Sequence record: NC_061446.1
Length of the DNA: 64,000 nt
Reading direction: 5' to 3' (one strand)
The notes under the pieces are model-generated. The model was not told the DNA's origin. It saw only the letters and a program-made list of their open reading frames with translations, and ran no database searches. Positions 24,894 through 54,020 of this stretch are shown piece after piece. Each line of letters begins with the position of its first letter. Positions within the stretch are counted from its first letter, which is position 1. Both the position numbers and the translations under genes were made by a program.

Positions 24894-25385
24894 TTAGGCA
24901 AATCGCCCACCACGCCATGCGGCCTTAATGAGCAACTTCGCCACGATTTCGTTCTTCATTGTCTTTCGCTTGGCATTGCTTCTGACAAATGCAGAGCCGA
25001 ACTTATTCACGACAATCAAACCGCAACCAAGGTCCTTGATACGGTCAATGATTCTATCGCCGTGAGATTCAAACAGCCGTTCATCAATGATGAAGTACAT
25101 ACGCATACAGAAAGGCAAATACTTGTGCCACTTCTTATCGGTGTTGAAGTCGGCCCAGCAACTCTTTACCTCAGTGATAATCATATCGCATTTGGTATTC
25201 AGGCAGAACACGTCAGCCCTTAAGTTACCGTGCTTAATCAGTCCAAGTTCAACGTGGCATGAATAGCGTTTGTCAATCCAGTAGCGTTGTGCAGCTTCGG
25301 TAAGAAAGGCCGTCTTATCAGGACGGCTCATTGATTTAAATACAGCGGTCTGAATGGGTTCAGCTTTGCGCCGCTTATAGGCCAT
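24894..25385 (-). CDS. MmcB-like PD-(D/E)xK nuclease/DNA repair protein
   Basis: RADVFCL...ITEVKSCWADFNTDKKWHKYLPFCMRMYF matches the MmcB pattern. Confidence 0.8.
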   Translation of the reverse strand: MAYKRRKAEPIQTAVFKSMSRPDKTAFLTEAAQRYWIDKRYSCHVELGLIKHGNLRADVFCLNTKCDMIITEVKSCWADFNTDKKWHKYLPFCMRMYFIIDERLFESHGDRIIDRIKDLGCGLIVVNKFGSAFVRSNAKRKTMKNEIVAKLLIKAAWRGGRFA

Positions 25386-25833
25386 ACGAGTCGATAATGT
25401 CCAGGGCTTGCTCTACGATAGGACGAAGTTTCTTATCCAATTTACGCAGAGCCTTATCCGCTTTGAACCATTTGCGTTCACGCGTCAGGGCTTCGTCGTA
25501 CTCGGTCAGCATAGTCTTGACCTTCATGACGTACCATTCAACGTGTTGCTCACGGCCGGTCTTGCCTTTGACGTAGCGCATAATGTCTACGAAGTCTTTT
25601 GGCTTACCGAGGACACCAGCTTCCTCCATGGCCTCTTTCAGAGCACTGTCCAGTGGAGTCATTCCCTTCTCCACCCCGCCTTTCGGCAGACCCCAGTTGC
25701 CAGCGTGAGTGGTACGAATCAACAACAGCTCAATCGTACCATCACTTCTTTTTCTGTATGGAATAACGCCCGACTGTTTGCGAGGTTTCTTCTCGCTTGG
25801 CAGTTTAGCAGACAATGATACGTTGATCATCAT
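25375..25833 (-). CDS. Nudix hydrolase
   Basis: WGLPKGGVEKGMTPLDSALKEAMEEAGV Nudix box. Confidence 0.9.
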   Translation of the reverse strand: MMINVSLSAKLPSEKKPRKQSGVIPYRKRSDGTIELLLIRTTHAGNWGLPKGGVEKGMTPLDSALKEAMEEAGVLGKPKDFVDIMRYVKGKTGREQHVEWYVMKVKTMLTEYDEALTRERKWFKADKALRKLDKKLRPIVEQALDIIDSYGL

Positions 25834-26333
25834 AATGAATCGAGTCCCCGTGGCAGGTCAACATCCCAGCTACCGGCATTGTCTTTCCACAGGCCCTGAT
25901 CTTGCAACGTTCTGTAGGCATCAAACAGAGTTGCACGGGCTTGCACCGAGACTTCATTCGAACCGGCGGCACCTAAACTATAGCTGTACATACAGCCTGG
26001 GAAGTATTGTAGACGGCAGGACTCAAACGTGTCAAACACAATTTGGCCCTCTGCGTCGGCTACAACGCAGTGTGATGCCATACCACCTTGACCCAAAACA
26101 ACGATCTGATAGTCAGGATGTTTGTTGTAGACACGTTGAATAAACTCGGCTGCTTCTGCAAACGGTCGGGCTACTTGCGCAGCACGGTGACAGTTCTGTT
26201 CTACCGCAGACTCAGAAAGAGAGCGAGCGCCAGTCAGATTCATAGCCGAGGCAAAGATAAGAGTTGTGAGCGCTTCAGGCTCAACAGCAGTGGGGAAAAA
26301 CTTTGTGCCCCACGCTTGAGATAGCGAAAGCAT
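25830..26333 (-). CDS. Hypothetical protein with N-terminal LSLS / LSES motifs
   Basis: 167 aa; SD AAGGAG; late-promoter motif 30 nt upstream. Confidence 0.7.
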   Translation of the reverse strand: MLSLSQAWGTKFFPTAVEPEALTTLIFASAMNLTGARSLSESAVEQNCHRAAQVARPFAEAAEFIQRVYNKHPDYQIVVLGQGGMASHCVVADAEGQIVFDTFESCRLQYFPGCMYSYSLGAAGSNEVSVQARATLFDAYRTLQDQGLWKDNAGSWDVDLPRGLDSL

Positions 26334-26362
26334 GGACGTCTCCTTATACGATAGTCTCAGCT

Positions 26363-26370
26363 AAATTAGC
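26363..26370 (-). promoter_or_regulatory. GCTAATTT putative late-promoter motif
   Basis: Sits in a short intergenic gap 30 nt upstream of the start at 26333. Confidence 0.65.
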
Positions 26371-26371
26371 G

Positions 26372-26662
26372 TCAGTCGTGCGGACAGTTAAGCACTTGCT
26401 TGCGATTCTGCATAAAATCACGTGGAGCAGGACCAGAGATTACGACAGCATGTTTAACACGATGCTTTGTCGGTTTCTTTGATACATTGCAGCCAGCATG
26501 AGACAGTGCATCAAACGCAGCAGCAGCGGCCGGACCGGAAATAACGAGCGTGTGGGCGAAGAAAGGCTTACCCACTTTCTTCATTGTTCTGCCCATCAGT
26601 TCGTAGATGTGTTGCGCTTCTGCAACAGACGGCACAGTACCGCACCAAATATCGAACGTCAT
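26372..26662 (-). CDS. Hypothetical protein, 96 aa
   Basis: Coupled to the upstream ORF by an ATGA overlap. Confidence 0.65.
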   Translation of the reverse strand: MTFDIWCGTVPSVAEAQHIYELMGRTMKKVGKPFFAHTLVISGPAAAAAFDALSHAGCNVSKKPTKHRVKHAVVISGPAPRDFMQNRKQVLNCPHD

Positions 26663-27384
26663 TTCGCACCGTCCTTAATCATAAGAACGCCATTGAAAAT
26701 ACCGAACTTATCAGTGAAGCCGCTGAGGACATTATGGAGACTGCCGTCAGAATCAGGGCTGCCGTAAGGATCAAAAGCTGTGACGTCGATTTGCAAATGA
26801 GATGAACTGATGGTATCGCGTCCCTTTTCCGCAAGAAAGAGGGTATGGCCAGAAAAGCGCTGCTTATCAGTAATGAGCACACCCATGTTATTCCACGTAC
26901 GGGAAGAGGTTTCCAGCACAAAGACAGACGCTTCGAAAAAGTTGCATCCCAACTCAGGCTTGATCTCTTCGATGTAGTGAGCATCTTCGTGGTCAGTAAC
27001 AACAACGTCCACCGTAATGAAATCAGCTTCATTGCGACGGTTTCGCAACCACTGCCGCATACAGCGTTCAAAGTAGTCAGCCATCGCACAACAGATGCAG
27101 CTAAAGTTGGACGGGTCTTTCTTGGCGCGCGGTATGGCTGTAAGGCTGCGTTCATCAAATTTCCAGCTAACGTGATCAGTAACGAGGGTACCACTCTGCA
27201 TCTCAACTTCTTCATCGTTGATAAAGAAAAGGTTGGAGCGCTGCAAAGCGATGTTGGACATGACGTGAAGCGCACTGCTCCGTAGACCAAGCGGATGCTG
27301 AATCATAACACGGGCAGTAACGACACGCGGAACTCCGCCGTCCAAATAAGCGAAGTTCATTACACGTTGTAACACGGTGCGCAT
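26659..27384 (-). CDS. Hypothetical protein, 241 aa
   Basis: Fills the gap downstream of the spike gene; AAGGA SD. Confidence 0.7.
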   Translation of the reverse strand: MRTVLQRVMNFAYLDGGVPRVVTARVMIQHPLGLRSSALHVMSNIALQRSNLFFINDEEVEMQSGTLVTDHVSWKFDERSLTAIPRAKKDPSNFSCICCAMADYFERCMRQWLRNRRNEADFITVDVVVTDHEDAHYIEEIKPELGCNFFEASVFVLETSSRTWNNMGVLITDKQRFSGHTLFLAEKGRDTISSSHLQIDVTAFDPYGSPDSDGSLHNVLSGFTDKFGIFNGVLMIKDGAK

Positions 27385-27394
27385 AATGCGTCCT

Positions 27395-28183
27395 TTAGTT
27401 CAGGTTGATTGTCTGTCCATTTACAGATACATCTTGACCCGCTTCAATGCTAACAGCACCTTTCACGTCAAGCACATCATCGCCTTTAACAGTGACCTTG
27501 CGGCTGCCACCAATCTCAACAGTCTGGTTGCCTGTAATCTTAGTATACTGATTACCGCCGTCACCCTTAGCAGTACCTTTGAACTTGATACGCTTCTTTG
27601 GGTCAGGCTTGAGATTCTTAGGTGTCATCGTTGGGTCATTCAGAATGTAGTCAGGAATATCATTCTTCGTACCTGTGATGATAAGCTGTTGGTTGCCAAC
27701 AATCGTTTGGTTAACGTCGCCCATAATCGTCATGTGAAAATCACCAGACGTCACGAGGAAGTGTTCGTTGGTCATACGATCAATGATAAGTTGGGTGCCT
27801 GTAGACAGACGAATACCCATGCGATGTGGATAGTTCACCTGAAACTCAGGCAACATGTCGGCTTGCGTCATACGCACGTCAGTAGTATAGATACCTTCAT
27901 GCAACTGACCAGTAGGGAATTTAACGCCTACCTTGCCACCACGAGTAGGAATGAACTGAGCGCCGAACACGACTCCTTGACTCCCACCCTTGAGTCCTTC
28001 CAGATGACCAACAGCCGGGCGAATCCACGGAATAGACTCGTCAGGAATATCGTCAGTCAGACCCATAATACGCGCACGAATCTGGCAGATTTTCTGAGGG
28101 TCGTTATTGTCGATAACGATAGCCTCATACACCATCTGCGGGTCGATGCCTTTCTTTGAGTTAACTGTATTGAGTGGAATCAT
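27395..28183 (-). CDS. Baseplate central spike (gp5/gpV-like OB fold plus beta-helix)
   Basis: YEAIVIDNNDPQKICQIRARI...IPWIRP...P.RGGKVGV.F; C-terminal VxG repeats. Confidence 0.88.
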   Translation of the reverse strand: MIPLNTVNSKKGIDPQMVYEAIVIDNNDPQKICQIRARIMGLTDDIPDESIPWIRPAVGHLEGLKGGSQGVVFGAQFIPTRGGKVGVKFPTGQLHEGIYTTDVRMTQADMLPEFQVNYPHRMGIRLSTGTQLIIDRMTNEHFLVTSGDFHMTIMGDVNQTIVGNQQLIITGTKNDIPDYILNDPTMTPKNLKPDPKKRIKFKGTAKGDGGNQYTKITGNQTVEIGGSRKVTVKGDDVLDVKGAVSIEAGQDVSVNGQTINLN

Positions 28184-30075
28184 TTGTTCACCCGTGGTAA
28201 ATACATTTCAAGTTTCTCACCGTCAGGCGTACCATTCTTACCAGAGCCATCAACAGTACCATCGCCTAGAGAGCACAGGAAGTTACGCAGGTTCTCTTCC
28301 TGTTGACGAATGAGTTGTGCAAGGTTGGTGCTTGGACCAAGCAGCTTGCTAATAGAGAACGCGTCAAGACACTTATCAGGCAGGGCGTCGTCGAGCATAC
28401 GGTTCATGTCCTCCAGTCTGTTACTGACACAGCGCTGGTTGATTTGAGGACCATCGAGATACTCAGCCGGAATATCACCGTTAGCGATCAGGCCGTTCAC
28501 GTCATTGGTGAAACCACCGAGCATGTTTTCCATGCTATCAATACGCGAGGCAAGCGCACCAAGTATGCTGCCTTTGTAATTGATTGCAAGATTGACACTC
28601 AGCTTTTCCAGACTGTTCAGAGCGTTACAGATGCCAGTAAGATACTTGGCCATGTTGAACTCTTGCATCAGACTATTCAGATAGTCAGCGCCTTCGCCAT
28701 ACTTCGCCGCCAGCTCAGGGAACTTGAACATCTCACTATCAGTCTGGAACTGGTCGAGCATAACGTCAAGCTGTAGGCTATGTGTCTGCGCTAACCAGTC
28801 TATAGGGTTCGAGCCATCGAGCGCCTGTTTGATGTTCGAGTTGATCTGAAATGGACGCAGAATATTCGCAACAGTAGACAATGGCGTTTGAATGATGTTT
28901 GAGCCACCACCAATGTTTGACGTGCCTTCAACAGGAGTGAAGTTGCGACTCAGCAGAAAGGCTTCACTGTACATTCCACCAACGTAAACGCGTGTACGAC
29001 CAATCACCAGCCACTTACCTGACAGCTTAATGTCAGTCTCAACTTCACGCTTACCGTTTATCACACCAGCAGACACGTCAACAATATCAAACAGGTCTAC
29101 CTCAGGGCAGCCGCCAAGAATAAGAGCGCGAGCAGTCTCGGTATACGCCATAGACTGACGTTTATTCGAGTAGTATGCCTGCATGTACTTGTCATGGATG
29201 TTTATATCGTTGGTGGGCCGGGCATACGCTTTACGTGTACCAGCAATATCACCACGAACGTCGCTGTTAATGTTCAGAGGATCGCGGCTCTTAACGGTCA
29301 CGGTTGCAAGCTCATTCGTCTTGCCACTCGAATCAGTCCACAGCAGCTTCTCGCCGTAGTTGGACATACCGTTAAAGATACCACTCATTGACTTCGGACG
29401 GAACTCATGTAGATTGTATAGAGGAGATTCGCCGATAGGCTTATGGTTGAACAGCCAGTACGCCTTAGGGTCTTCATCAAAGAGTTTGTTTATGTCACGC
29501 ACGACCATGCGCTTGTCTGCCGTAATGAACATCTTCGGCAGCGCTTCTTCCGAGATCCACATATGCTGTTCGATCTCATGCGCAAACTTCTTAGGCGAGC
29601 ACGTTGCAGATACCCAGTTCATGATATCCGACGTTTGCACATCACCGAAGTCAGGCGTTAAGCCACCGAACGAGGCAACTTGTTTCAGAGCGTCAATGGA
29701 GGTTCCGCGAATGCTAAAGCTACGCGTATCGAAGATGAAGGTGGGAGCGTCGAGAATACACAACACGTTAAGCATTGGTGTTCCGCCTTCACCATACTCC
29801 CTGACTGCATAGACAGAGAACGTAAGCGTAGACGCTGACTCCTGATCAGGACCCATCACCATTGTTATCTTCGTGCCGTCTACAATCGCGTGAGTGGATC
29901 GTAATACGTTCGTCTGGTCAGAGAATATGATCAGAGCGCAGGGCAATGCAAATGTGTTTTCGTACACATGAACGGAGCGGATAAGGTTAGGCATAGACGG
30001 CGGTGCTTTGCCGTCTAACAGAATACCGAAGTAACCTTGATCCTTTACGCCACCAGAAGTAGCTTGATCAGACAT
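28180..30075 (-). CDS. Baseplate hub (gp27/late control D-like) with a helical C-terminal extension
   Basis: Directly upstream of the spike; VHVYENTFALPCALIIFSD, LSGKWLVIGRT. Confidence 0.7.
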   Translation of the reverse strand: MSDQATSGGVKDQGYFGILLDGKAPPSMPNLIRSVHVYENTFALPCALIIFSDQTNVLRSTHAIVDGTKITMVMGPDQESASTLTFSVYAVREYGEGGTPMLNVLCILDAPTFIFDTRSFSIRGTSIDALKQVASFGGLTPDFGDVQTSDIMNWVSATCSPKKFAHEIEQHMWISEEALPKMFITADKRMVVRDINKLFDEDPKAYWLFNHKPIGESPLYNLHEFRPKSMSGIFNGMSNYGEKLLWTDSSGKTNELATVTVKSRDPLNINSDVRGDIAGTRKAYARPTNDINIHDKYMQAYYSNKRQSMAYTETARALILGGCPEVDLFDIVDVSAGVINGKREVETDIKLSGKWLVIGRTRVYVGGMYSEAFLLSRNFTPVEGTSNIGGGSNIIQTPLSTVANILRPFQINSNIKQALDGSNPIDWLAQTHSLQLDVMLDQFQTDSEMFKFPELAAKYGEGADYLNSLMQEFNMAKYLTGICNALNSLEKLSVNLAINYKGSILGALASRIDSMENMLGGFTNDVNGLIANGDIPAEYLDGPQINQRCVSNRLEDMNRMLDDALPDKCLDAFSISKLLGPSTNLAQLIRQQEENLRNFLCSLGDGTVDGSGKNGTPDGEKLEMYLPRVNK

Positions 30076-30077
30076 GA

Positions 30078-30491: not shown

Positions 30492-30784
30492 TAGATTTGC
30501 GTCCTCTTAACTTTCTTGATAGCAGAACTCGGACGCTTCTGAGGTATCGCCATGAGCATCCCTGCCTGCATCTCAGATGGATGAAGCAGAGCGTTCGCAA
30601 TAAGCAACAACACCCAGTTAGCGTTCGAGCCGTATGTAATGTGCGACAAGAGTTGAGGATTGCCCTCCATTGAGGCGTCGATGCGAGTTGGCGTGGTGTA
30701 CAGCGCCGTGTCTACATCCTCAAACACCTTCATACTTAGAGGGTCAATTCCCCACTTGTCGATCACGCCTATTGTTTCAGCCAT
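30491..30784 (-). CDS. Baseplate gp53/LysM-like (tail X) protein
   Basis: GNPQLLSHITYGSNANWVLLLIANALLHPSEMQAGMLMAIP. Confidence 0.75.
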   Translation of the reverse strand: MAETIGVIDKWGIDPLSMKVFEDVDTALYTTPTRIDASMEGNPQLLSHITYGSNANWVLLLIANALLHPSEMQAGMLMAIPQKRPSSAIKKVKRTQI

Positions 30785-31575: not shown

Positions 31576-31587
31576 ACAAACTCCTTA

Positions 31588-36337: not shown

Positions 36338-37012
36338 TTAGTCCTCTACAATAACAAGCACAGGTCTAACGGCATCGTCGAACTTGAGGAACGTAGCACC
36401 AACCAGATAGCCACCGTTTTCAATCTGCTTCACGACTGCTTTCTCGTAGTCCGTTTCCCACTTGTCACGCTGATTGGCTTTGTAGCCTTCAAACGTTTCT
36501 GACGCGTCGTAGTAGTTATACGTTCCGCCAGTCGGCATTGGGATTCGAGCAAGGAACTCAATACGACCAGCGTTTTTAAACTTGGCCTTACGTATCTCCT
36601 GAGTCAGCTTCGTGTTCTCGGCTTTAGAGCCAGGAACAGCTTTGAATGGTTTCTTTGGTTGTGGTTCTTTCGGTGCGGCAGGAAGTTTCTCACGCGCTGG
36701 AGTATTCTTGTCACTCGCTTTCTTAATGCGAATGCCGGACACTGTGCCAGTGAACGGACGGCTGCGGCCAAGCAACGAACGTGCTGTAGGCGCATCGACT
36801 TCAAACACTACTGACGGGTCATCCTTATGCAGCACATAGAACTTGTTACGCTTTGCAGCCAAGATACCGAATACATCTTTTTCCTCGATATCGGCTTCAT
36901 GCTCCTTGTTCTCAATGCTTACCTTGCGCTTACCTTCGAAGCGGTACCAGTCGCAGTCTTGAATCCCTACGGCAGGTGTCTTACGTGCGCTTTCGCTCAG
37001 TAGAATAAGCAT
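36338..37012 (-). CDS. Putative head-internal protein with the shared ~65-aa domain
   Basis: MLILLSESA N-terminus, then WYRFEGKRKVSI...EKDVFGI...KDDPSVVF; Pro/Lys linker. Confidence 0.65.
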   Translation of the reverse strand: MLILLSESARKTPAVGIQDCDWYRFEGKRKVSIENKEHEADIEEKDVFGILAAKRNKFYVLHKDDPSVVFEVDAPTARSLLGRSRPFTGTVSGIRIKKASDKNTPAREKLPAAPKEPQPKKPFKAVPGSKAENTKLTQEIRKAKFKNAGRIEFLARIPMPTGGTYNYYDASETFEGYKANQRDKWETDYEKAVVKQIENGGYLVGATFLKFDDAVRPVLVIVED

Positions 37013-40886: not shown

Positions 40887-41987
40887 TTAACCACGAACAG
40901 CTTTAGCTACAGAGCGCACGTTCGCCAGAGTGAAGGAGAAGGTGCTAGACAGCAGCCAGCCGCGGTCGGTGTTACCCTGGTTCGCGCCAGAAGTCGGGGT
41001 AGACTGGGTACCGCCACGAGTGGTGTACACTGCGTGGTAGTCCTGGTCAGCCAGAACATACAGTTCGCCGTCGTGCAGTACGCGGTGTTCCGGAGCGCGG
41101 AAGCCGTCAGTTACCAGTTCCATACCCAGCAGGGTACCCAGACGACCAGTGGTGATCAGGTCGTATTTGCTTACCGGGTCCAGAGCAGAGGAGAACTGAT
41201 CGTTACCAACGATATCGTTCCAGTAGTCCTGCGCCATCACAGCGGTGCTAACAGGCAGCGGCCATGAAGACACAGAATTTTTCAGAGTAGACAGCAGACG
41301 CGGAGTCAGGTCGCCGTGTACCCAGGTGATCGGGTTAGCAACACCGACTGCCTGGTCACAAGCGCGTTTCCACAGACGGTCTTCTGCAACCATGATAGAA
41401 GACAGGCCGTCCTGTTGAGCGCGGTCCAGCAGATCGCCGTTGATTTGGTCCAGGTCCATTTTGCTAACACGAATGTTAGATTTCAGTTCGAACTCAGCAG
41501 GCGTGTAAACACGGCCGCGGAATTGACGGTAACCGAAGTCAGTAGGACCGGTCGCGATTACAGCTTCTGCCTGGTGGATTTTCAGTTCGATACGAGCAAT
41601 GTCGCCCTGACGAACGGTAGCGCCTTTACAAACTTTGCGCAGCAGGCCAGCACGTTCAGCACGGTCTTCGATAGATGCAACGATAGAAGCACCCAGAGAA
41701 GCCCACTTCTCGCCGCTGCTATCAGCAACAGCTTCCTGAATCAGCTCGACTTTCTCAGCGTCGGTCAGACCGTTCTGAGCGCCAGAGTGAGAGTGAACGA
41801 GGTTGCCGTTGGCAGCTTCGTCCATCAGACGGCTGATGTTACGCAGGAGGTCTTTGTTCGAGTAGGCGTTGATTTCGCCGGTGCTCTCACTCAGAGCCAG
41901 ATCGCCTTTACCACCGAAGCGCAGGTCTTCGATTGGGGCACCGTTACGCAGAGTTACTTTAGCGCCGCGCATTAAGGAATTGTTCAT
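40887..41987 (-). CDS. Major capsid protein (HK97-like fold)
   Basis: 366 aa, strongly biased codons, IMVAEDRLW, GRLGTLLGMELVTD; follows protease, scaffold and decoration-like genes. Confidence 0.85.
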   Translation of the reverse strand: MNNSLMRGAKVTLRNGAPIEDLRFGGKGDLALSESTGEINAYSNKDLLRNISRLMDEAANGNLVHSHSGAQNGLTDAEKVELIQEAVADSSGEKWASLGASIVASIEDRAERAGLLRKVCKGATVRQGDIARIELKIHQAEAVIATGPTDFGYRQFRGRVYTPAEFELKSNIRVSKMDLDQINGDLLDRAQQDGLSSIMVAEDRLWKRACDQAVGVANPITWVHGDLTPRLLSTLKNSVSSWPLPVSTAVMAQDYWNDIVGNDQFSSALDPVSKYDLITTGRLGTLLGMELVTDGFRAPEHRVLHDGELYVLADQDYHAVYTTRGGTQSTPTSGANQGNTDRGWLLSSTFSFTLANVRSVAKAVRG

Positions 41988-42804: not shown

Positions 42805-44820
42805 TTACATGCGGCGCAGACGGGACAGCTTATCTTCGAATGAGCCAGTGGAAGCTGAACTCTGGGATTGAACAGGTACGTCGCTCTGAGTCAGCAGTTC
42901 AGCGGCGTTGACCGGAGCTTTAGGCTGCGCGGCTACAACTTGCTGTTGAACAACTGGAGCACGTTCTGCGGTAACAGTACCAGCAGCCGCGTCGATAGAC
43001 TCAGAGATTTCGTTCTGCGCGACTTCGGACTTATTCATCAGGTCCATCGCTTTTGACAGCGCGGTCGTCAGGAAGTCTTTGCCGTGGGCGATGAATGCGC
43101 GTTCGACTACAGCGCGTGGTTCTTTGATGCCTGCTGCGGACAGCGAGCTAACCAGGCTTTCGACGATTGGGTTACGCACATCACCCCAGAAGTTTTTGGT
43201 AACGCCCAGCTGGGATGCAGACAGAGCAGCGACGAAACGATCAGTGTAAGCTGAGGTCGCTTCTTCGATAGTGCCCGTAACGTTCGCAGTAGCTTCGCTA
43301 ATACGTGCGTCAGATTCTGCCACCAGCAGTGCATCTACCGGCATTTCGATCTGATACGGCATAAAGCCGAATGCTTCACAAGTACCGGTCACTCCAGCGC
43401 TGTTAAGCGAGTGTGATACTGCACGGATGAAATTATCAGATGCGAAAGATTTCGCAGCGTTTTCTTCGCCAACTGCACCAGACACAGAAGCGAATGTTGC
43501 GCGAGCAATCGGCTGGCCGTCGTAGTACATATGTACAGTGTCGAGCTTGCCAACAGCGCGGCTCAGGCTAACCAGCTGAGGGTCAAGCGTGCCGTGTTGT
43601 GCTTGCGCGGTAGACAGGCTGTTGAAGACGCGGCTGACTGATTTGCTTTCAGAATCAAAATCATCTTCGTCATCGACGTCGAGATCATCTTCTTCCAGTT
43701 CTTCCTCGTCGTCGAGGTCTTCATCATCGAGGTCTTCATCCTCGTCAATGTCGTCTTCGTCTTCGAGATCGTCGTCAGAGCTGGATTCTGAATCGAAGTC
43801 CTCGTCCTCGTCTTCTTCTTCGAGGTCGTCCAGGTCTTCGTCATCTTCCAGATCTTCATCGTCAATGTCGTCCAGATCGTCTTCATCCAGATCTTCATCG
43901 TCGAGGTCGTCTTCGTCATCAATATCATCTTCATCATCGTTAGACGATTCAGAGTCGAAGTCTTCGTCCTCGTCATCAGATGAATCATCTTCATCCTCGA
44001 GGTCTTCTTCTTCGATAATATCAATGTCGCTGTCGTCGTCGCCAGATTGGGATGCAATCGGCTCGTCGACCAGCGCGGCAGAACAATGCGCACAGAACAC
44101 AGGCTCTTCATCAGAGCTTACAGTGAACGGCTGTTCGCAGTTAGCGGAGCAGCTATAGATGTGCGCTTCGACTTCGCCATTGGCGGCGTTGCTGGACAGA
44201 GCAGTGATAGCTTCTGGAGCTTCCTGCGCTTCGCAGTTCTCAACGGCCTGGCCGGTGTACGGGTCGAAGTTTACGGTAGTAGCAGCGTTGAAGCTACCAG
44301 TACCGGACAGTGCGGTAAACGCGTGTGCGTTGCTCAGAGCCAGAGCGAAGTTGCGTTGTGCAGCTTCGGCAGTCTCGCCGGTAGCAACCAGACCAGCGTG
44401 TTCAATCTGTTCGTCAGCAGAAGCGGATTCGGCCAGGAACTGAGTAACACGTTCGTCGGTGATTTCGGACAGGTCAGCAGAGCACGATGGGCAGCAGCCC
44501 TGAACCAGCGCGGCAGAATCAGAGATAACGTGGCTACCACAACCATCAAGACAGATGGTGTAATGAGCTTTCACATCACCAGCAGAAGACTGCGACTGGA
44601 CTTCGGCTTTCTCAACCAAATCAGGATGCTCCACCAGCAGTTCTTCACCGCCGTTCGGATTGTAGAGGTCAGCGCCACTTTGCGAAGCAAAGCCTACACC
44701 TTCAGCAGAACCATAAATCATCAGGTTCTGACCGGTTGCAGTGCGGCGAAAATTCTCTACTGCCTGATTATGGTTTTGACCGACACACAGGATACCCGCG
44801 AGTTGGGTAATCTTTGGCAT
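42805..44820 (-). CDS. Prohead scaffold/core protein with two Cys-rich modules and a long acidic tract
   Basis: GAGG SD before MPKITQ; CLDGCG...CCPSCS and CSANCE...CAHCS; ~125-aa D/E tract. Confidence 0.7.
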   Translation of the reverse strand: MPKITQLAGILCVGQNHNQAVENFRRTATGQNLMIYGSAEGVGFASQSGADLYNPNGGEELLVEHPDLVEKAEVQSQSSAGDVKAHYTICLDGCGSHVISDSAALVQGCCPSCSADLSEITDERVTQFLAESASADEQIEHAGLVATGETAEAAQRNFALALSNAHAFTALSGTGSFNAATTVNFDPYTGQAVENCEAQEAPEAITALSSNAANGEVEAHIYSCSANCEQPFTVSSDEEPVFCAHCSAALVDEPIASQSGDDDSDIDIIEEEDLEDEDDSSDDEDEDFDSESSNDDEDDIDDEDDLDDEDLDEDDLDDIDDEDLEDDEDLDDLEEEDEDEDFDSESSSDDDLEDEDDIDEDEDLDDEDLDDEEELEEDDLDVDDEDDFDSESKSVSRVFNSLSTAQAQHGTLDPQLVSLSRAVGKLDTVHMYYDGQPIARATFASVSGAVGEENAAKSFASDNFIRAVSHSLNSAGVTGTCEAFGFMPYQIEMPVDALLVAESDARISEATANVTGTIEEATSAYTDRFVAALSASQLGVTKNFWGDVRNPIVESLVSSLSAAGIKEPRAVVERAFIAHGKDFLTTALSKAMDLMNKSEVAQNEISESIDAAAGTVTAERAPVVQQQVVAAQPKAPVNAAELLTQSDVPVQSQSSASTGSFEDKLSRLRRM

Positions 44821-44896
44821 GGTTAAAACCCTCATAGAATTTAGTCGTTGAATCGACAGGTTGAAATTAAAATATGCAGAAAAAATTCAGGTATTT

Positions 44897-46021
44897 TTAA
44901 ATTTTTCTGCTATCAATGTCAGTCTGAGGAATATATCTGTTTTCGAAGTATTTCGAGACAATTTCAACACCATTTAAGGTATATACGTTGCGCAGGCTAT
45001 ATCCCCAAACCATCAGCTCCGCAAGCGTTGCGAAGTGCTCGGCGGGTACCGAACTAATGGTTCGCGCATTAAGCGAATCTGGATGGATTTTCTTACCCTT
45101 GATGGCCTGATCGAACTTCATGCGATCAACGTTACGAATCATCGTATGGTCCACAAAATGGGCCAGTTCGTGAGTAATAACGTGCGCCATACTCAGGCTA
45201 TTATATCCACCAAGTAAATGCACCAACTGCGCAGGATGGATTGAAATAGCGCCATACAGGAAGCCGTGTACGCGATACGTTGCGATATGGCTACCACCAC
45301 TATCCGAGTTAGCTTTTAACAGACCAACATACAGACGTTTGAATGGCAGTGCTATGTTCAGACCAATGCCAGGCATGACGTTTTCCTGAATGTCTTTAAG
45401 CACATAATCAGGAGGACTAACGCCGTTCTTCTCAAGCGTAACGCCCGGCACACGCAGGTCATCCATACCCATTATTTCAAGATGCACTTTACCGCACTTC
45501 TTAACAGGCTTGGTGGCGTAGTTGTTTGGCGTACCACCCGGATAAATTGCTGAGGCATATTGCAGTGGTTTGAAATTACCAAAATCAGGCATATCGTCAA
45601 CACGACGCTGAATAGCCTTTAATGAATCTGGCGTGTCTTCCTCAGCAGAGTCCTCAACAGATGCTTCCGGCTCAGGTTCTGGTGCAGGCTTTTTCTTGAT
45701 AGAAACTGGTTTGGGTTTTGGTGCTGGTGGCGCAGGCTTCTTCTGCTTCTCCTCATAAGGGGTGAAGTCAAAGCCAGGCTTAAAGAGCGCATCAGGTTTT
45801 GCAGTGAATGGGCGACTGTTCTGAATGAGCTTGTCACCGTCTTCTCCACTGATTGCATAGGCCTGATCGTATTTAGGATGGGCTATGTAGTACAGGTCGC
45901 TGTTCACTTTGAGAAGGCCAATGACCTCGCGCGGCTCCATGTGGACACCGTTTGAGATCATTGCCGCCTGACCGAGATAGCGATAGTACGAATAGTCAGC
46001 TATTGCTAAACCTTGTGGCAT
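44897..46021 (-). CDS. Shared-domain protein with a C-terminal HExxH zinc metallopeptidase (start revised to 46021)
   Basis: TGATG coupling to the protease stop; YYRYLG...REVIGL; VITHELAHFVDH (45158-45172) and a downstream AEHFA. Confidence 0.7.
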   Translation of the reverse strand: MPQGLAIADYSYYRYLGQAAMISNGVHMEPREVIGLLKVNSDLYYIAHPKYDQAYAISGEDGDKLIQNSRPFTAKPDALFKPGFDFTPYEEKQKKPAPPAPKPKPVSIKKKPAPEPEPEASVEDSAEEDTPDSLKAIQRRVDDMPDFGNFKPLQYASAIYPGGTPNNYATKPVKKCGKVHLEIMGMDDLRVPGVTLEKNGVSPPDYVLKDIQENVMPGIGLNIALPFKRLYVGLLKANSDSGGSHIATYRVHGFLYGAISIHPAQLVHLLGGYNSLSMAHVITHELAHFVDHTMIRNVDRMKFDQAIKGKKIHPDSLNARTISSVPAEHFATLAELMVWGYSLRNVYTLNGVEIVSKYFENRYIPQTDIDSRKI

Positions 46022-46800
46022 CAGGCCATCCTTAACAGATGTTCTTTGTATGTTGCAGCACACGCGAACGCTGGGTCGTCTACGCTACTGCACTCAAAGC
46101 CTGTCAGCATCTTGCAATCACGATAGACCAATCGGCCAGTACGCGCATCAAGATACGTTGGTTTGTTGAACGCCGTATGCGAACAGAAGTTACGATGTTT
46201 AGGCGTAACCAACTGACCACAGATACTGCACTTATACGCACGATAGGTTGTGCCTTTGCTGTACGTGTTCAGTTCACCGCTCATGATACGATCACAGCGC
46301 TCAGGACAACGAGAACGGTCGAAGGCCAGCAGCAACGTCAGACGCGCATGGTCACCACGGAAGTTCTTGAGCTTGGACAAGTTACTGTCGAAGATCATGC
46401 CCATGGCTTGGCGATAGTCTTTGTTGTTGTGTTCGATAAACGTCGGCTTACCAATGAACGTCTGATATGCAAGACGGCCCTGGTCAGGGTTGAACGTTAA
46501 CCACTCCTGCAGGCTAAACGCATCACCATTCGTGTTCGGCAGTTCAGTGATGTTTACCGGAACAGGCACGATGATGTAGTCGCGGATGTTGCGTGACGTG
46601 TTATACATCTCAGCCGCTTTAGGCAGCCACACGTTCACGTCAAGATTAAAAGAGCCTGTCTCAATACCGAAACGCGACGCATCCACACGGATAGACTTAG
46701 CTGTACGGCTAACATCTTCCTTGTGCATATCAATCGCGTTCAGTCCGACGAGGCCCATGTCCGAGGTATCAAACGACTCGGAGCGAATGGACTGGTCCAT
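46021..46800 (-). CDS. Prohead maturation protease (herpes/HK97-like serine protease fold, zinc-ribbon insert)
   Basis: PNTNGDAF, FIGKPTFIEHN, YSKG, CSICG...CSH, ECSSVDDPA. Confidence 0.8.
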   Translation of the reverse strand: MDQSIRSESFDTSDMGLVGLNAIDMHKEDVSRTAKSIRVDASRFGIETGSFNLDVNVWLPKAAEMYNTSRNIRDYIIVPVPVNITELPNTNGDAFSLQEWLTFNPDQGRLAYQTFIGKPTFIEHNNKDYRQAMGMIFDSNLSKLKNFRGDHARLTLLLAFDRSRCPERCDRIMSGELNTYSKGTTYRAYKCSICGQLVTPKHRNFCSHTAFNKPTYLDARTGRLVYRDCKMLTGFECSSVDDPAFACAATYKEHLLRMA

Positions 46801-46810
46801 CGTGTACTCC

Positions 46811-47242: not shown

Positions 47243-48104
47243 GCGCCCACGACTTAGCGAGAGCCAGAGTCATACGCGTCGGGTTATGAAGTTTGACTTC
47301 ACCTTTGTGGACGGCAGTGAACGGCTCATGAGGATTCTGACTGCGGCCAGAACGATAGGCAGCTTCATTGAATCCATCAAACAGCGTTACTACCCAGCCA
47401 GTGGATTTATCAGAGCATTCACCACAGGCTTTGTCCCACGCAATCTTACCGCACACACGTCCACCAGCGTTAATCGCATAACTGACCTGCTCAGTGCCTT
47501 TATAAATGTCAGAGGCTTTGAGCGTTTTGAAGGTCACACGCGACGATGATTCAGAGCGCGGCATCATCTTTTCTTTGATTGCTTCAACATCAAGCGAACC
47601 CCAGAAAGATTCAAACAGCGCGGCAAACTTCTGCTCAATAGGAAGTTCGATTGCGTTGATTTGTGCGATAGTGCTGGAGCTATCTTCCAGCACACGATTA
47701 AGGAAGTAGCCGCCTAAGATCACAGGCATCTGAGTGCCTTGTGAACCAGCAGTCAGGCCAGCCTTCTTACAGTAGATTTCAGACAGGCCGATAGCGAGAC
47801 GCGCAAGAGTCATGAACGTCTGCTTCTCGGTCGAGTTAGCAATCTCTGTATAGATACGCGCAGCGATGGCAGGAACAACAGTACGTTTCGCCACGCTCAG
47901 AATATCTTCCGGCTTAATAGGCTGGCCGAGCTTTTTACGCGCAGCCAATTCGAAAGCGTTAATCAGGCTGGCTTTGTTCGCTGCCGTCAACGACTCGCCT
48001 AACTTGATAGTCGTCAGCTCCGCGCTGCTCACTATCCCCTGTTGAGGCGTTTTCTCCAGTCGGCGTACTCCCGACGTCGATCTCACCAATCGCTTCACTG
48101 TCAT
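47223..48104 (-). CDS. Hypothetical protein (start revised to ATG 48104)
   Basis: AGGA SD 8 nt before MTVKRLVR; overlaps the GT gene 3' end by 146 nt. Confidence 0.6.
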   Translation of the reverse strand: MTVKRLVRSTSGVRRLEKTPQQGIVSSAELTTIKLGESLTAANKASLINAFELAARKKLGQPIKPEDILSVAKRTVVPAIAARIYTEIANSTEKQTFMTLARLAIGLSEIYCKKAGLTAGSQGTQMPVILGGYFLNRVLEDSSSTIAQINAIELPIEQKFAALFESFWGSLDVEAIKEKMMPRSESSSRVTFKTLKASDIYKGTEQVSYAINAGGRVCGKIAWDKACGECSDKSTGWVVTLFDGFNEAAYRSGRSQNPHEPFTAVHKGEVKLHNPTRMTLALAKSWARGALRG

Positions 48105-49212
48105 TTGTTTGTTCCTGAGTAGCAGGCTGCTGCATATAAGCAAGCAGACCAGAGTTCTGAATTGCTTCACCCAAATCTTCACCGCGGTGCATGGTAAGTT
48201 GGGCAAGGTAGTTGAGAGCAGGTTCAACCATACCGAGATTACGACAGCCCCAATAAGCTGTTTCGTAACATAGATCTAAATTAATAGAGGTCTGGTCAAA
48301 CAAGAAACTTTTTGGATTCTGCTTGGTCGCTTCGATGCCTTGAATAGCCATACCCACAGCATTCATCATATCGTTGTGACGATAGAAAATATCAGCAAGC
48401 ATACCGTAGCACTCAACGCGATCCGGGCGGAATGCAATCGCGCGATAACACGCAAAGATAGACTCCTGAGTGAATCCCTGTTTGAATGTTGCTTTCGCCA
48501 GCTCAATATTGGCAATAGCCACATAGTCAGCCCAGCGAGCAATGCCAGCGAGGCGATCTACTTCACGACGAGCATCATCAAGCAGGTCAGCACGATCACC
48601 GTAGCACACGGCATAGCAGAGTTCACGCGCATAGTAGAAACTGCAACGATCATCATGTGGATAATCACCCACATCCAGACCAAGCTCAAGCAGATAACCG
48701 CGCGGCTTTGTGTTGTCAGGGTAGTGGTCAGTTGCGAACGTTGCCTCTACAGTACGCAGACGCTGATCGGGTTTGCGCGACGACAGGACTTCATGCGCAC
48801 GATACTTCCAGAAGTAAGAGCGACGACGATACGCTTTCATCTGCTGGTAATGACTGTCACCGTTACGCATCAGAATCCAAACAGCTTCGGCATGTTTGAT
48901 GTGTTTGGTATTGCGAAGCGTCTCAACCCAATTAGGGTCATCGAAACGTTCGTCAATGTCAAGCCACACAACGAGGTCGTCCTCGGAGAACGGCGTAGCG
49001 GCCAGTTCACGACTCGCGCCCAGATTGCGCTCCTGTGATACGTCGAACACATGATACAGGTTAGGGTGCGTGAACGCCGAGATGATGTTCGTGGTTTGGT
49101 CTTCACTACCAGTGTCAACAATACTGATAGCATCGGCCGCAGCAACGTGCTCCAACCACTCACCGATGTTCTTTTCTTCATTACGGCAAATAGCCGCTAC
49201 GCAGATTCTCAT
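47959..49212 (-). CDS. Family 2 glycosyltransferase with C-terminal TPR-like repeats
   Basis: ICRNEEKNI, IVDTGSEDQT, DxD in WLDIDE, WKYRAHE, FYYARE, AIAFRPDRVECY. Confidence 0.9.
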   Translation of the reverse strand: MRICVAAICRNEEKNIGEWLEHVAAADAISIVDTGSEDQTTNIISAFTHPNLYHVFDVSQERNLGASRELAATPFSEDDLVVWLDIDERFDDPNWVETLRNTKHIKHAEAVWILMRNGDSHYQQMKAYRRRSYFWKYRAHEVLSSRKPDQRLRTVEATFATDHYPDNTKPRGYLLELGLDVGDYPHDDRCSFYYARELCYAVCYGDRADLLDDARREVDRLAGIARWADYVAIANIELAKATFKQGFTQESIFACYRAIAFRPDRVECYGMLADIFYRHNDMMNAVGMAIQGIEATKQNPKSFLFDQTSINLDLCYETAYWGCRNLGMVEPALNYLAQLTMHRGEDLGEAIQNSGLLAYMQQPATQEQTNDSEAIGEIDVGSTPTGENASTGDSEQRGADDYQVRRVVDGSEQSQPD

Positions 49213-49228
49213 ACATGCCTCATTTGGG

Positions 49229-50152: not shown

Positions 50153-52107
50153 TCCAGTTTGTATTTGCTCTTGAACTCCGCAATGCTCATAACAGGAATG
50201 CCCTTGTCAATCGCTTTCTGTAGCTTCGCGGAACCAGAGCCAGGGTCTTTAGCGATCAGTATCGTCGTATCAGCTTTCATGCTGTCAGACGCTGTACCGC
50301 CAAGTTGGACAATACGTTGCATCAATTCTTTATCGCGGATGCCTGTGAACGCTACGTTAATCCCTTTCAGTTTGGCGCTAACCACCTTCACCTTCTTCGG
50401 AGCAACGAGAGTCACTTCCATCTCAACAGCCATCAGATAAGACTTAATGGCCGCATCTGCGATCTGTGGAGCCAGCTTATCAACACCGTGCATACTGCTA
50501 ATCTTTGTTGCTAGGTCAGCAGTATTACCTTTCTTCAAATAAGATTCGAGGTTAGGCACAGCATCAACAACCTTATCAAACGTCGTGTTAGCGCCGCGCA
50601 TGAAGTATGAAGCGGTAGCTTTAAGCCACGTATTCATCGGTACGCCAGCTTTCAACGCTTTCAGGTCTTTGGCCAGTTGACGACCACGAGAGTCACCAAC
50701 GATCTCACGCAACGTTGCCATAGGAGTCATGAACAATTGCTGAGGAGTTTTAACACCTGAAGCAACAAGCAGTTTACACGTACTCGGTCCAGTGTTCGCA
50801 ACGTCAAGCCCTTTCAAGAACGAGCCAAGCATACGAGAGTCAGCAGCACTGGTCTTCGTCTTAGCAACGAACTCAACGCCATTGATCTTGTACTGTACGT
50901 CAGGCAGCTTAGGCTTCTTAGCAGGCTTGAGAATCTCCATGATGTATGGGATTACCTTGCCGCTTCGAATCAACTTAACCTTAGCACCTGGGCCAAGAGG
51001 ACGCTTAGGTCCCATGACAGCACCTTTCTTCTTGGGCTTGAGATAGCCGTGCTCAACGTAGAAACCGTTGTGCGCAGAAGCACGTTCAACCGTAACACCG
51101 CCAGGCATAACAGTAGGCGGGAAGATTGCAACAGGAGCCAGCACACCGTACTTGGACTCTTGATAGATTACGTCTTTGACAGTCACGATAACAGTGTCCG
51201 ACTCAACGTTCATCTTGAACTTGAAAGCGTGTTTAGGATTGCTCGCAGTAGCTTTCGGCGTAGGAACATCGCGGGTCATTACAATCCCATCGAGTTCATA
51301 CTTTGCCTTAGCGATGCGTTTGTCCAACCACGGAATGAGTTCTTCTTCCGACTCAAAACGCATAGGGCCGAAGTGGCGAACTACTTCGAATCCCCATTTC
51401 TCCAGCAGCTTGAACTGCGAAGACTGTTTGAGTGTAGCACCTTTACCGCCGATGATACCGAAGCATACCATGTGGACGTACTTGAACTCTTTCGCTGTTT
51501 CGAAGTTACGCACCAGACCGGACGCTGCGTTACGAGCGGCTTTGAAGCGACCACCAGCAGACTCATGCAGCTTTGCCATAAAGGTCTTGTATGGTATTAA
51601 CGCTTCACAGCGTAACACCACTTGGCCCTTCTCAGAGATTTTCTGAGGAATACGCATAGCAGGCAGGTGCTGCGACACGTCTTTACCATGAGTTGCATCG
51701 CCACGAGTAAGCGCACGAACAGGCACGCCACCCTCGTAAACGATTTCAATACTCAGGCCGTCGAGCTTGTCAGTCAGAATCCAGTCAACGTCTTCGGCGA
51801 GAGCTTTGGTTAGTTGCTTACCACCCAGAGTGAACTGGTCGAGACTTGCCATTGGCACAGGCAGCTTAACGTCTGAATCATCACGCGCACCAACCTTGCG
51901 CGCCAGCTTAGATTTAGGCCAGCGCTTGTCGATGTAGGTACGGATGTAGTCGTACACAGCGTCCGATATCAGACCTTCCGAATCAGTGTGGAACGCATCA
52001 TCAAGATGCGCCACAAGTTTCGTTGCCTGCGTCAAATTGAGCGTGTCGAGAACCTTATCAGGATTCTTTTCGAGCCGCTTCAAAGAGATTTGCATGTTAT
52101 TCTCCAT
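50149..52107 (-). CDS. ligA: NAD-dependent DNA ligase
   Basis: Motif I KLDGLS, ALTRGD, LRCEA, RNAASG, ELDGIV, AFKF, OB fold, HhH, C-terminal BRCT (VAFTG). Confidence 0.95.
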   Translation of the reverse strand: MENNMQISLKRLEKNPDKVLDTLNLTQATKLVAHLDDAFHTDSEGLISDAVYDYIRTYIDKRWPKSKLARKVGARDDSDVKLPVPMASLDQFTLGGKQLTKALAEDVDWILTDKLDGLSIEIVYEGGVPVRALTRGDATHGKDVSQHLPAMRIPQKISEKGQVVLRCEALIPYKTFMAKLHESAGGRFKAARNAASGLVRNFETAKEFKYVHMVCFGIIGGKGATLKQSSQFKLLEKWGFEVVRHFGPMRFESEEELIPWLDKRIAKAKYELDGIVMTRDVPTPKATASNPKHAFKFKMNVESDTVIVTVKDVIYQESKYGVLAPVAIFPPTVMPGGVTVERASAHNGFYVEHGYLKPKKKGAVMGPKRPLGPGAKVKLIRSGKVIPYIMEILKPAKKPKLPDVQYKINGVEFVAKTKTSAADSRMLGSFLKGLDVANTGPSTCKLLVASGVKTPQQLFMTPMATLREIVGDSRGRQLAKDLKALKAGVPMNTWLKATASYFMRGANTTFDKVVDAVPNLESYLKKGNTADLATKISSMHGVDKLAPQIADAAIKSYLMAVEMEVTLVAPKKVKVVSAKLKGINVAFTGIRDKELMQRIVQLGGTASDSMKADTTILIAKDPGSGSAKLQKAIDKGIPVMSIAEFKSKYKLE

Positions 52108-52133
52108 TCGTCAGTAACACTGGTATTTACAGT

Positions 52134-54020
52134 CTAGCTGGCGATTGGGTCTTTGTTGACGGGATAATCTTCGGCCATGTCGAGCACACGATTGAACAGC
52201 TTAGGCGCCATATCCTTCACATGTTCTGCATAGTCAAAGAGGTTCTGTTTACGCGCACGGTTAACACGTACCTGACGTACTTCATCAGGGCTGTTGGTAA
52301 TATCGTACAGCGTATAGATAACGATGTTGTCGGATTTGGAGTGGGTGCTAACACGCAACACAACCCAATCGCGTTTCAACTTAGCATCAGCACGGAACTG
52401 GAGCACGTCGCCTTCTTCTGCTTCCTCTGCGCGAGCGCTTGGAGTAGATTTGTTGGCAGCAGCGATTTTCTTCGCTGTCTCTTTCGATTCCTGCTCGGCA
52501 GCAGCAACGTCAGAGTCCGTGTCTTCGTCGGCAGATGTTTCGTCTACTGCATCAGATGTGTCTGCATCATCTTCGGCGTCTGAGGCATCTTCGTCGCTGT
52601 CGTCAGATTCTGATTCATCTTCACCTTCCGAATCAGCTCCTCCGTCGTCGGCATCGTCATCATCCACGGATTCGGCGCTGGAGTCGTCCCCCTCATCAGA
52701 ATCGTCTGTATCGCTATCGTCAGAGTCTTCTTCCACATCGGTGTCTTCCTCTTCTTCGCCGTCATCTTCGGAAGTGTCTTCGTCCTCTGAAGGTTCTTCT
52801 TCCTCTTCTTCATCGGCTGGTGCAGGTGCAGCTTTCTTGCCTTTAGCACGAACCTTAGGCGGAGGAGTATCTTCCTCATCCTCTTCCGGTTCGTCAATAT
52901 CAGACAGATCGAGAGAAGGTTCTTCGTGGTCTTCTGAGTCATCACCGCCAAACAGTGAGCCTACAGAATCTTCGATGTTGAACGCATCGCCAGCGAATGG
53001 ACTACGAGACAGAATATCTTCCAGCTTCTGCTCGTCGAGGTCAAGATCGATACCTACTTCTTCGATCTCGTCATCCAGGATTTCTTCTTCAACCACACGA
53101 ACACGCTTACCACGACGGTCAATACCATCTTCGTAGACAGTGCGCACTTCGGCTTTAGGCGCTTCGATCTCACCTGACTTAACCTTGTTACGCAGGTCAC
53201 GCATTTCAGCAGAACGCTCTAAGGCTCTCTTACGCGCTTCTTTCTGGAGTTCTTTGCGTTGTTGCTTCTGCTCCAGAACCTTCGCGTTGTTGGCCAGGCG
53301 TGTTGCTTCTTCCTGCTCTTCCTGAGAACGGCGGCGAGCACGACGCACAACACGGCGATAAGCCTTAATCGTATCTACGTCAACTGTACCTTTCGGCCAG
53401 TCGTTCATTGGCAGAATGTTGGTGTCATGAATCAGCAGGTCATACTGCGCATCATCGACTTTGAGGAACATGCCCTCAGAGTTAATGACGATGCCGCCTT
53501 TACCCTGACGCAAGAAACGAACACCAATCATGTCGTTCTTGTACAGCTTGGTCATACCCTTAGAAGTCTTCACAGGGTATTCTGGACTTGCGACCATGCG
53601 CCACTGGTAGTTATCAAAGTCGATGCCGTAGACAGCTTCTGACTTGACCTTACGCGGGCTGAAACGCGCCGCATCGAACTGAGAGCGCATTAACTGACGC
53701 TGCAATGTTTGTGCACCAGCAGTCTTGGTGCGTTTACCTTCACGGTTAACAACGTCTGGCACCTTACGCAGTTTAGATGCGCGTTCAATCAAGAACAGGC
53801 CAGTTGCTTTATCAAGCGGGAAGTCAACGTGCGGCATATCTGGGAAAATGAGAGTGTAGCGTCCGCCATTACGCAGCGGGAGAATGCCGAATACATCGCC
53901 TTCACGAATCATGCGCTTATGCGTTCGTTGTGCGACTTCTTTTCCACGAGGACCTGTATACTTCATCCACGCGTACTTCGACACGGCATCCTGATAAGAT
54001 GCAGATACGGAAAGTACCAT
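52134..54020 (-). CDS. Putative head-internal protein: two copies of the shared domain, coiled coil, acidic tract
   Basis: MVLSVSAS N-terminus; WMKYTG...EGDVFGI and YQWRMV...KNDMIGV repeats; ~190-aa D/E-rich tract. Confidence 0.7.
   Translation of the reverse strand: MVLSVSASYQDAVSKYAWMKYTGPRGKEVAQRTHKRMIREGDVFGILPLRNGGRYTLIFPDMPHVDFPLDKATGLFLIERASKLRKVPDVVNREGKRTKTAGAQTLQRQLMRSQFDAARFSPRKVKSEAVYGIDFDNYQWRMVASPEYPVKTSKGMTKLYKNDMIGVRFLRQGKGGIVINSEGMFLKVDDAQYDLLIHDTNILPMNDWPKGTVDVDTIKAYRRVVRRARRRSQEEQEEATRLANNAKVLEQKQQRKELQKEARKRALERSAEMRDLRNKVKSGEIEAPKAEVRTVYEDGIDRRGKRVRVVEEEILDDEIEEVGIDLDLDEQKLEDILSRSPFAGDAFNIEDSVGSLFGGDDSEDHEEPSLDLSDIDEPEEDEEDTPPPKVRAKGKKAAPAPADEEEEEEPSEDEDTSEDDGEEEEDTDVEEDSDDSDTDDSDEGDDSSAESVDDDDADDGGADSEGEDESESDDSDEDASDAEDDADTSDAVDETSADEDTDSDVAAAEQESKETAKKIAAANKSTPSARAEEAEEGDVLQFRADAKLKRDWVVLRVSTHSKSDNIVIYTLYDITNSPDEVRQVRVNRARKQNLFDYAEHVKDMAPKLFNRVLDMAEDYPVNKDPIAS

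Follow-up and report, generated by a model that had tools for sequence, protein, structure and literature searches.

A hydrophobic-S-x-S tag on late proteins of the Erwinia jumbo phage pEa_SNUABM_30 is a putative site of its head-maturation protease

Proteolytic head maturation and protein packaging have, to our knowledge, been detailed only for phage T4 and for the phiKZ/SPN3US group, where all the proteases involved are Glu-specific. Here, we analysed a DNA stretch of 64,000 nucleotides (the window), identical in sequence to bases 62001-126000 of Erwinia phage pEa_SNUABM_30 (NC_061446.1, 259,771 bp), and a short serine motif that recurs in the late proteins of this phage. About 20 late proteins, otherwise unrelated, bear near their start a tag of the form h-S-x-S-A (h, hydrophobic; x, any residue). 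That this tag is a real, selected signal is in our judgement highly probable, and a fairly likely explanation is that the motif is the recognition site of gp140, the putative head-maturation protease. From the position bias of the motif, its conservation, the selection acting on it at the protein level, the fold of the protease and the kinds of protein that carry it, we infer cleavage, the exact bond, the enzyme responsible and a role of the tag in packaging. A sequence-only reading of window positions 25375-54020 had proposed a phage-specific S-x-S rule marking the internal proteins. Position bias, conservation with a free middle residue, codon switches, the protease-type substrates and the gp21-like fold of the protease speak for the core of this proposal; corrections concern the bare form of the motif, some listed instances (those of gp118 and one in gp138) and the rule in distant relatives. 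Moreover, the tag reaches beyond that span, to the gene at window positions 9524-10156 and to about 10 genes outside the window.

pEa_SNUABM_30 is a jumbo phage of the genus Alexandravirus in the PaBG/Lu11/phiRSL1 lineage, the phiKZ lineage being excluded. Relatives detected by tblastn with the major capsid protein (MCP) were other Erwinia, Dickeya and Yersinia jumbo phages, followed by PaBG, Lu11 and phiRSL1. By lineage we mean Alexandravirus, Y3, Yoloswag, the Dickeya JA phages, PaBG, Lu11, possibly phiRSL1 and many metagenomic jumbo phages. All genes of the window lie on the minus strand, and the late block comprises baseplate, tail, head module and sheath. Orthologues were aligned from the syntenic regions of Alexandra, Y3, Yoloswag, Yen9-02, JA11, PaBG, Lu11 and phiRSL1.

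The motif is enriched near the N-termini of late proteins

The S-x-S instances listed by the sequence-only reading all exist in RefSeq coding sequences (Table 1). Chance expectations were obtained from the whole record, in which 336 open reading frames (ORFs) were called (their starts equal the RefSeq starts in 38 of the 42 window genes) and each protein was shuffled. Over whole proteins, the excess was weak: h-S-x-S was observed 183 times in the genome for 141 expected (1.3x), the bare S-x-S had the same ratio (1.25x), and within 25375-54020 there were 31 h-S-x-S for 19 expected. Close to the protein starts, however, the excess was marked. Among the 148 proteins of the late-block set, 14 had h-S-x-S starting at residues 2-15, whereas 3.8 were expected (0/500 shuffles). 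For h-S-x-S-[A/T] in the same interval, the count was 8 against 0.63 expected, and still 8 against ∼1.0 when residues 2-20 alone were shuffled (0/1000); for a start at residues 2-40, it was 13 against 1.7. This five-residue motif was 13-fold enriched, and in late proteins only.

Past residue 40, no enrichment was detected in the late-block shuffles (14 versus 9.7 expected). In the same test, the control patterns A-x-A, T-x-T, S-xx-S and SS gave no N-terminal enrichment, and the Glu-type motifs of T4, phiKZ and SPN3US ([LI]xE, [ASG]xE and AxE) gave none at the N-termini of late proteins. Thus, the pattern exceeds chance in the N-terminal context only, and the signal resides in a five-to-six-residue context rather than in bare S-x-S. 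The expectation that the bare motif would predict sites inside protein bodies was not borne out; the informative unit is two hydrophobic residues, S-x-S and A/T/G, close to the N-terminus or in a linker.

Anatomy of the motif and two classes of leader

We retained 24 sites and aligned them on the putative cut. Their logo has a hydrophobic residue at P5 (20/24), V/A/L/I/M at P4 (19/24), Ser at P3, a free P2, Ser at P1 and, at P1', Ala in 13 sites and Thr, Gly or Ser in 7. Two classes of N-terminal leader end in this motif. Class A, M-x-I-x-V-S-L-S, comprises eight leaders, seven of them exactly 8 residues long, on gp117 (a Nudix hydrolase), gp130, gp173, gp188, gp200, gp201 and gp243; gp146 has a six-residue form. 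Class B starts with M-[S/A]-L-I-K and ends in S-x-S after 13-17 residues; its four leaders are on gp106, gp189, gp191 and gp244, and the Y3 orthologue of gp171 also has one. In gp106, the leader begins M-S-L-I-K and ends S-S-S before T; the three other proteins with this type of start are encoded outside the window. Hydrophobic residues number 3-4 per leader, position 2 is often Glu, and many other sites are internal.

Past the leader, the carriers have no similarity to one another, except for the KMPT-N proteins and the gp171/gp244 pair. Relatives place the same leader on other, non-orthologous proteins: nine gene starts within 50 kb bear it in JA11, and in a metagenomic phage with an MCP of only 49% identity it is present on four ORFs surrounding the head genes.

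Both serines are conserved at the protein level

In orthologues down to 45-50% identity, both serines are kept and the middle residue varies: it is E/S/Q/A/G/K at MCP site 1, E/T/M/I in gp113, V/E/L in gp146, and, in homologue sets, E/T/V/A/L in gp130 and E/H/K/T/V/I in the N-terminal S-x-S-F of the protease. The same behaviour was found outside the window for gp171, gp173, gp181, gp189 and gp200. The homologue clusters of gp130 all retain S-x-S-A (31/31), even where one-residue indels affect the leader. In gp113, A-S-x-S-A is present in 5/5 orthologues within a poorly conserved flank (identity 0.24). In gp146, L-S-x-S-A-S occurs in Alexandra, Y3 and Yen9-02, and Lu11 has I-S-L-A-A. In gp117, V/I-S-L-S-A is kept in Alexandra, Y3, Yoloswag and Yen9-02 and lost in JA11.

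Moreover, orthologues encode each of the two Ser by TCN in some cases and by AGY in others, as in gp117 and at MCP site 1 (AGT/AGC here, TCT/TCC in Y3 and Yoloswag). Because a change of codon family needs two base changes, it is the amino acid that is under selection. The same switches led us to reject a nucleotide signal, be it DNA or RNA, at the gene starts. Cleavage after Glu, according to a rule L/A-S-E↓S (arrow, cut), was another candidate, prompted by 10 [LIA]-S-E-S in the late block for 2.3 expected. It was rejected, since the middle residue varies freely in orthologues, Glu at the conserved sites being exchanged for S, T, V, A, K, H or Q.

Conservation also removed candidates. Neither of the two instances listed in gp118 is conserved (Table 1), and this protein is probably outside the system. 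Most internal h-S-x-S of tail and enzyme proteins are lost in more distant relatives. PolA residue 32 and PaBG SbcD (phosphoesterase motif I) were dropped as chance matches, as was the non-conserved I-S-E-S-I of gp138, and the tail-sheath-like gp155 was dropped because its whole region is conserved.

As a fixed rule, S-x-S applies to this clade and relaxes in distant kin. Because Ala or Gly often replaces the Ser of these sites in PaBG, Lu11 and phiRSL1, the sequence comparison indicates that the general rule is small-x-small and that S-x-S is its enterobacterial-clade version. In phiRSL1, four small ORFs (locus L011 7335, 7654, 9267 and 16860, plus strand), one of them directly following the protease gene, have the common N-terminus M-x-Y-x-I-x-A-A-x-x-R-L, which may be the counterpart of the leader family in that clade.

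The protease gp140 has an assemblin-like predicted fold and bears the motif

Searches of PDB, Pfam and NCBIfam with the gp140 sequence gave no match. Its AlphaFold2 (AF2) model (predicted local distance difference test score, pLDDT, 83) has the assemblin-like fold: in VIA-align it aligns to T4 gp21 (5jbl) with Z 9.6 and a root-mean-square deviation of 3.0 over 140 of 166 residues, the next matches being herpes assemblins (Z 5.0-5.4). Foldseek alone gave only E = 0.08 for gp21, so that re-alignment by VIA-align was needed. H124 and S181, the putative catalytic residues, are invariant in 30 homologues. An S-x-S-F close to the start, a candidate autoprocessing site, is the consensus in most of these homologues, down to ∼45% identity, and lies inside the low-confidence N-terminal 20 residues of the model. 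From phiRSL1 to pEa_SNUABM_30, the genes keep the order protease, gp139, acidic gp138, gp137, MCP.

After the putative catalytic Ser, residues 191-208 of gp140 form an invariant Cys-x-x-Cys ... Cys-x-His (Cys3-His) insert, which falls in an additional part of the model that is not aligned with T4 gp21, a shorter chain. This insert is probably a zinc-binding element.

Two sites in the capsid protein and many in a scaffold-like protein

Among 104 MCP homologues, site 1 has Leu at P4 in 90, Ser at P3 in 67 (Asp in 19), Ser at P1 in 71 and Thr at P1' in 79, with a free P2. Site 2 coincides with the only internal segment of the AF2 model (overall pLDDT 84) with pLDDT <50 (residues 68-71), where a 65-residue N-terminal module joins the body of the protein. 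In the variable linker there, 66 of 100 homologues have small-x-Ser, whereas ∼11 were expected; the Ser-rich surroundings and the kinship of the sequences raise this count. A subclade (P0072, P0077, P0084 and others; locus L020 10001-11092) has L-D-x-K-T in place of site 1 and keeps the linker S-x-S, the protease S-x-S-F and class-A leaders; site 2 is kept in the distant contig L020, which is without site 1. A cut at site 2 would remove 68 residues, or 18.6% of the protein. In PaBG, virion proteins are proteolytically processed and the MCP loses ∼20% of its mass (PMC7412058), in agreement with this value. The model and this agreement suggest that site 2 is likely the final maturation cut.

The many motif copies that had been seen in a 'scaffold' are indeed present in gp138 (Table 1). 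About eight of its sites, at residues ∼45, ∼78, 99, 256, 399, 417 and 445 and near the C-terminus, are kept in Alexandra, Y3, Yoloswag, Yen9-02 and JA11, again with a free middle residue, and D-F-D-S-E-S repeats lie in a long Asp/Glu-rich region. gp138 looks like a scaffold or core protein. Its gene lies between those of the protease and the MCP, as gene 22 does in T4. Other features of the protein are two zinc-ribbon-like CxxC...CxxC pairs and a C-terminal domain whose conservation extends to phiRSL1. RefSeq and PHROGs label it 'ATPase', and no ATPase hit was obtained in Pfam or NCBIfam.

Comparison with known maturation systems

gp140 resembles T4 gp21 in the predicted fold, in the gene neighbourhood (protease, core or scaffold protein, MCP) and in the kinds of putative substrate. 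A further likeness lies in the capsid-targeting sequences (CTS) of T4, which are short N-terminal leaders on unrelated internal proteins. They are 10-20 residues long, and Alt loses 6 residues (PMC5694885). The eight class-A and four class-B leaders are likewise short, N-terminal, placed on unrelated proteins and ended by the putative protease motif. However, T4 cuts after Glu (L/I-x-E), whereas no Glu is conserved here and Ser stands at P3 and P1; an indirect test for cleavage C-terminal to Glu was negative, as Glu-type motifs lack N-terminal enrichment and Glu is freely exchanged. gp140 also differs from gp21 by its Cys3-His insert and the absence of a Pfam match.

A similar motif is that of phiKZ gp175 and SPN3US gp245 (MEROPS S80), S/A/G-x-E or A-x-E, with a small P3, a free P2 and a hydrophobic P4, as in pEa_SNUABM_30. 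The SPN3US rule V-A-x-E↓S, with V at P4 and S at P1' (PMC10052503), has the same h-small-x-P1↓small architecture, Ser replacing Glu at P1 in our case. A small P1' and several sites in propeptides are also shared, and the MCP, the protease and ejection proteins are processed in that group. The SPN3US portal is processed, whereas the pEa_SNUABM_30 portal only bears a candidate site. The systems differ at P1, which is Glu there and Ser here (Ala/Gly in distant kin), and in lineage, the phiKZ-lineage MCP being ∼740 residues long and the present one a 366-residue HK97-type protein.

The herpesvirus assemblin consensus is (V/L/I)-x-A↓S. These enzymes have a related fold (Z ∼5) and small residues at P1 (uncharged) and P1', but the hydrophobic residue is at P3 instead of P4/P5, the virus is eukaryotic and short N-terminal leaders on cargo are absent. 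Signal peptidase I (A-x-A) shares the small -3/-1 residues after a hydrophobic stretch; the stretch here is of only 3-4 residues, without an n-region, many sites are internal, and the carriers are virion proteins and enzymes that are not exported. Taken from sequence and model comparisons, gp140 would be set apart from the characterized phage members by the missing Glu-P1 signature, with the fold of gp21 and a function like that of the T4 CTS and phiKZ/SPN3US systems.

A proposed scheme of head maturation

The carriers (MCP with two sites, protease, gp138, candidate portal, enzymes and proteins without assigned function) mirror the substrate range of T4 gp21 and SPN3US gp245 (PMC5694885), which supports recognition of the motif by gp140. 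In the proposed scheme, the enzyme would read hydrophobic P5/P4, Ser P3, any P2 and Ser P1, and cut after the second Ser, leaving Ala or, less often, Thr, Gly, Ser, Phe or Lys as the new N-terminus. Within the prohead, gp140 would trim itself, dice the acidic scaffold-like gp138, remove the ∼68-residue N-terminal module from the capsid protein and free cargo proteins of their short leaders or longer propeptides. This cargo would include the Nudix hydrolase, the giant SNF2-type helicase-like protein, three KMPT-N proteins and several unknowns. By analogy with T4, the leaders probably also act as capsid-targeting sequences.

Several points weigh against this scheme. As far as we know, the characterized phage proteases of assemblin fold all cut after Glu. 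No direct N-terminal or semi-tryptic mass spectrometry (MS) data were found for this lineage, nor, with incomplete coverage of phiRSL1, any paper on a cleavage motif or N-terminal leader in it; the original Y3 GenBank record has no MS notes. An unbiased a-x-b scan of all residue pairs did not single out bare S-x-S. The homologue sets contain related sequences, so that their counts are of non-independent events. The linker near MCP site 2 is Ser-rich, and the signal there may be partly compositional; at site 1, one subclade, whose protease keeps S-x-S-F, has D-x-K in place of S-x-S. Finally, the phage encodes a second 'peptidase', gp207, of unassigned class.

Other explanations were considered. 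An N-terminal beta-strand that docks on a scaffold, portal or chaperone surface and stays uncleaved would account for the alternation of hydrophobic and polar residues over 7-8 positions of the class-A leaders, and the modular use of the tag on unrelated proteins fits targeting equally well. We regard it as unlikely because the same motif is also internal, in the MCP (33-35, 66-68), gp113 (132-134), gp181 (58-60) and the scaffold-like protein; moreover, the PaBG virion proteins are reported to be processed.

It is more doubtful still that the sites are cut by another enzyme, either gp207 or a host small-x-small protease of signal-peptidase type. The small -3/-1 residues do recall the signal peptidase I rule, and gp207 (record 175122-176096, outside the window; JA11 locus L017 48909-49886; PHROG 17197), which has no sequence match in Pfam, NCBIfam or PDB, is conserved in Yoloswag and JA11. 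However, the leaders are no Sec signal peptides, having neither the basic n-region nor the hydrophobic core of 7-15 residues, the carriers are of capsid-interior type, and the prohead protease itself bears the motif, as self-processing proteases do.

We give little credence to S-x-S as a modification sequon, for O-glycosylation by a GT2 enzyme or for phosphorylation. In all relatives examined, the head module has a conserved glycosyltransferase gene (47959-49212) as its neighbour; yet in distant relatives Ala or Gly occupies these positions, where a modification that depends on a hydroxyl is thereby ruled out, and the strict N-terminal placement with hydrophobic P4/P5 is typical of protease sites. 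Chance, through Ser-rich N-termini and low-complexity linkers, is barely credible: bare S-x-S is also enriched at early-protein N-termini (18 versus 8.6) and false positives exist (the PolA, gp118 and SbcD matches), but the five-residue motif is enriched in late proteins only and is conserved with codon switches and across leader indels.

If gp140 does recognize the motif, a second rule readable from sequence would be at hand, for a jumbo-phage lineage that is large and widespread. Packaged and ejected proteins would become predictable, in this phage the Nudix hydrolase, the SNF2-type giant helicase-like protein, KMPT-N proteins and about 10 unknowns. Mature N-termini would be available for structural work on capsids, and the leader would be a candidate tag, of very small size, with which foreign proteins could be loaded into phage heads. 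We further advance, as a tentative extension, that the P1 pocket of the lineage protease takes Ser/Ala and not Glu, linking the Ala-P1 of herpesviruses to the Glu-P1 of T4, and that M-x-I-x-V-S-L-S is a portable load-and-release tag that would bring arbitrary enzymes into the capsid, to be delivered together with the DNA. In that case, the gene starts of each phage would reveal its ejected proteome.

Features of the window and other carriers

Table 1. Motif-bearing features of the window. The motif residues of gp117, gp118, gp130, gp146, gp113 (first row), MCP site 1 and the protease are the instances listed by the sequence-only reading, numbered on the RefSeq coding sequences
Feature	Window position	Strand	Motif residues	Remarks
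gp106, residues 1-18	10103..10156	-		17-residue class-B leader and residue after putative cut; collagen-repeat protein, gene 9524-10156
gp113, internal site	23424..23438	-	131-135	587 aa, gene 22065-23828; KMPT-N at 141-201
gp113, second conserved site	23562-23576	-	85-89	
Nudix hydrolase gp117, class-A leader	25810..25833	-	5-9	8 residues; gene 25375-25833; NUDIX domain 22-141
gp118	25830..26333	-	2-6, 39-43	both S-x-S in Alexandra and Y3 only; lost in Yoloswag, Yen9-02 and JA11, flanks conserved
gp130, class-A leader	36989..37012	-	5-9	8 residues; 224-aa KMPT-N protein, gene 36338-37012
MCP gp136	40887..41987	-		366 aa, HK97-type; PHROG 2522; tblastn to PaBG, Lu11 and phiRSL1 MCPs
MCP site 2	41781..41795	-	65-69	H-S-x-S-G; S66-x-S68
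MCP site 1	41880..41894	-	32-36	L-S-x-S-T
Scaffold-like acidic gp138	42805..44820	-		671 aa; 22 S-x-S
Putative head-maturation protease gp140	46021..46800	-		259 aa; PHROG 18299
Protease S-x-S-F site	46771..46785	-	6-10	candidate autoprocessing site
gp146, leader	54003..54020	-	3-7	6 residues; 628-aa KMPT-N protein, gene 52134-54020; KMPT-N at 16-80

The Pfam domain KMPT-N (PF20294) has five copies in the whole genome, all in the window: one each in gp113, gp130 (residues 20-84) and gp146, and two in gp139 (44897-46021, minus strand), whose gene adjoins that of the protease. In three of the four carriers, an S-x-S site lies directly upstream of the domain, at a distance of 4-12 residues. KMPT-N may thus be a head-internal module, and the putative processing rule, if true, would give a context to this uncharacterized domain.

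Some carriers are encoded outside the window. The giant SNF2-type helicase-like gp173 bears a class-A leader; its 221-kDa helicase-like counterpart in PaBG is a virion component (PMC7412058) and has S-L-S-A at residues 9-12. The candidate processing site of the portal protein (record 5590-7530, plus strand) is F-V-S-Q-S-A at residues 49-54. Finally, gp243 (class A) and gp244 (class B, a gp171 paralogue) are encoded at 201684-203594 of the record, on the otherwise early-looking plus strand, just upstream of the exopolysaccharide (EPS) depolymerase gene.

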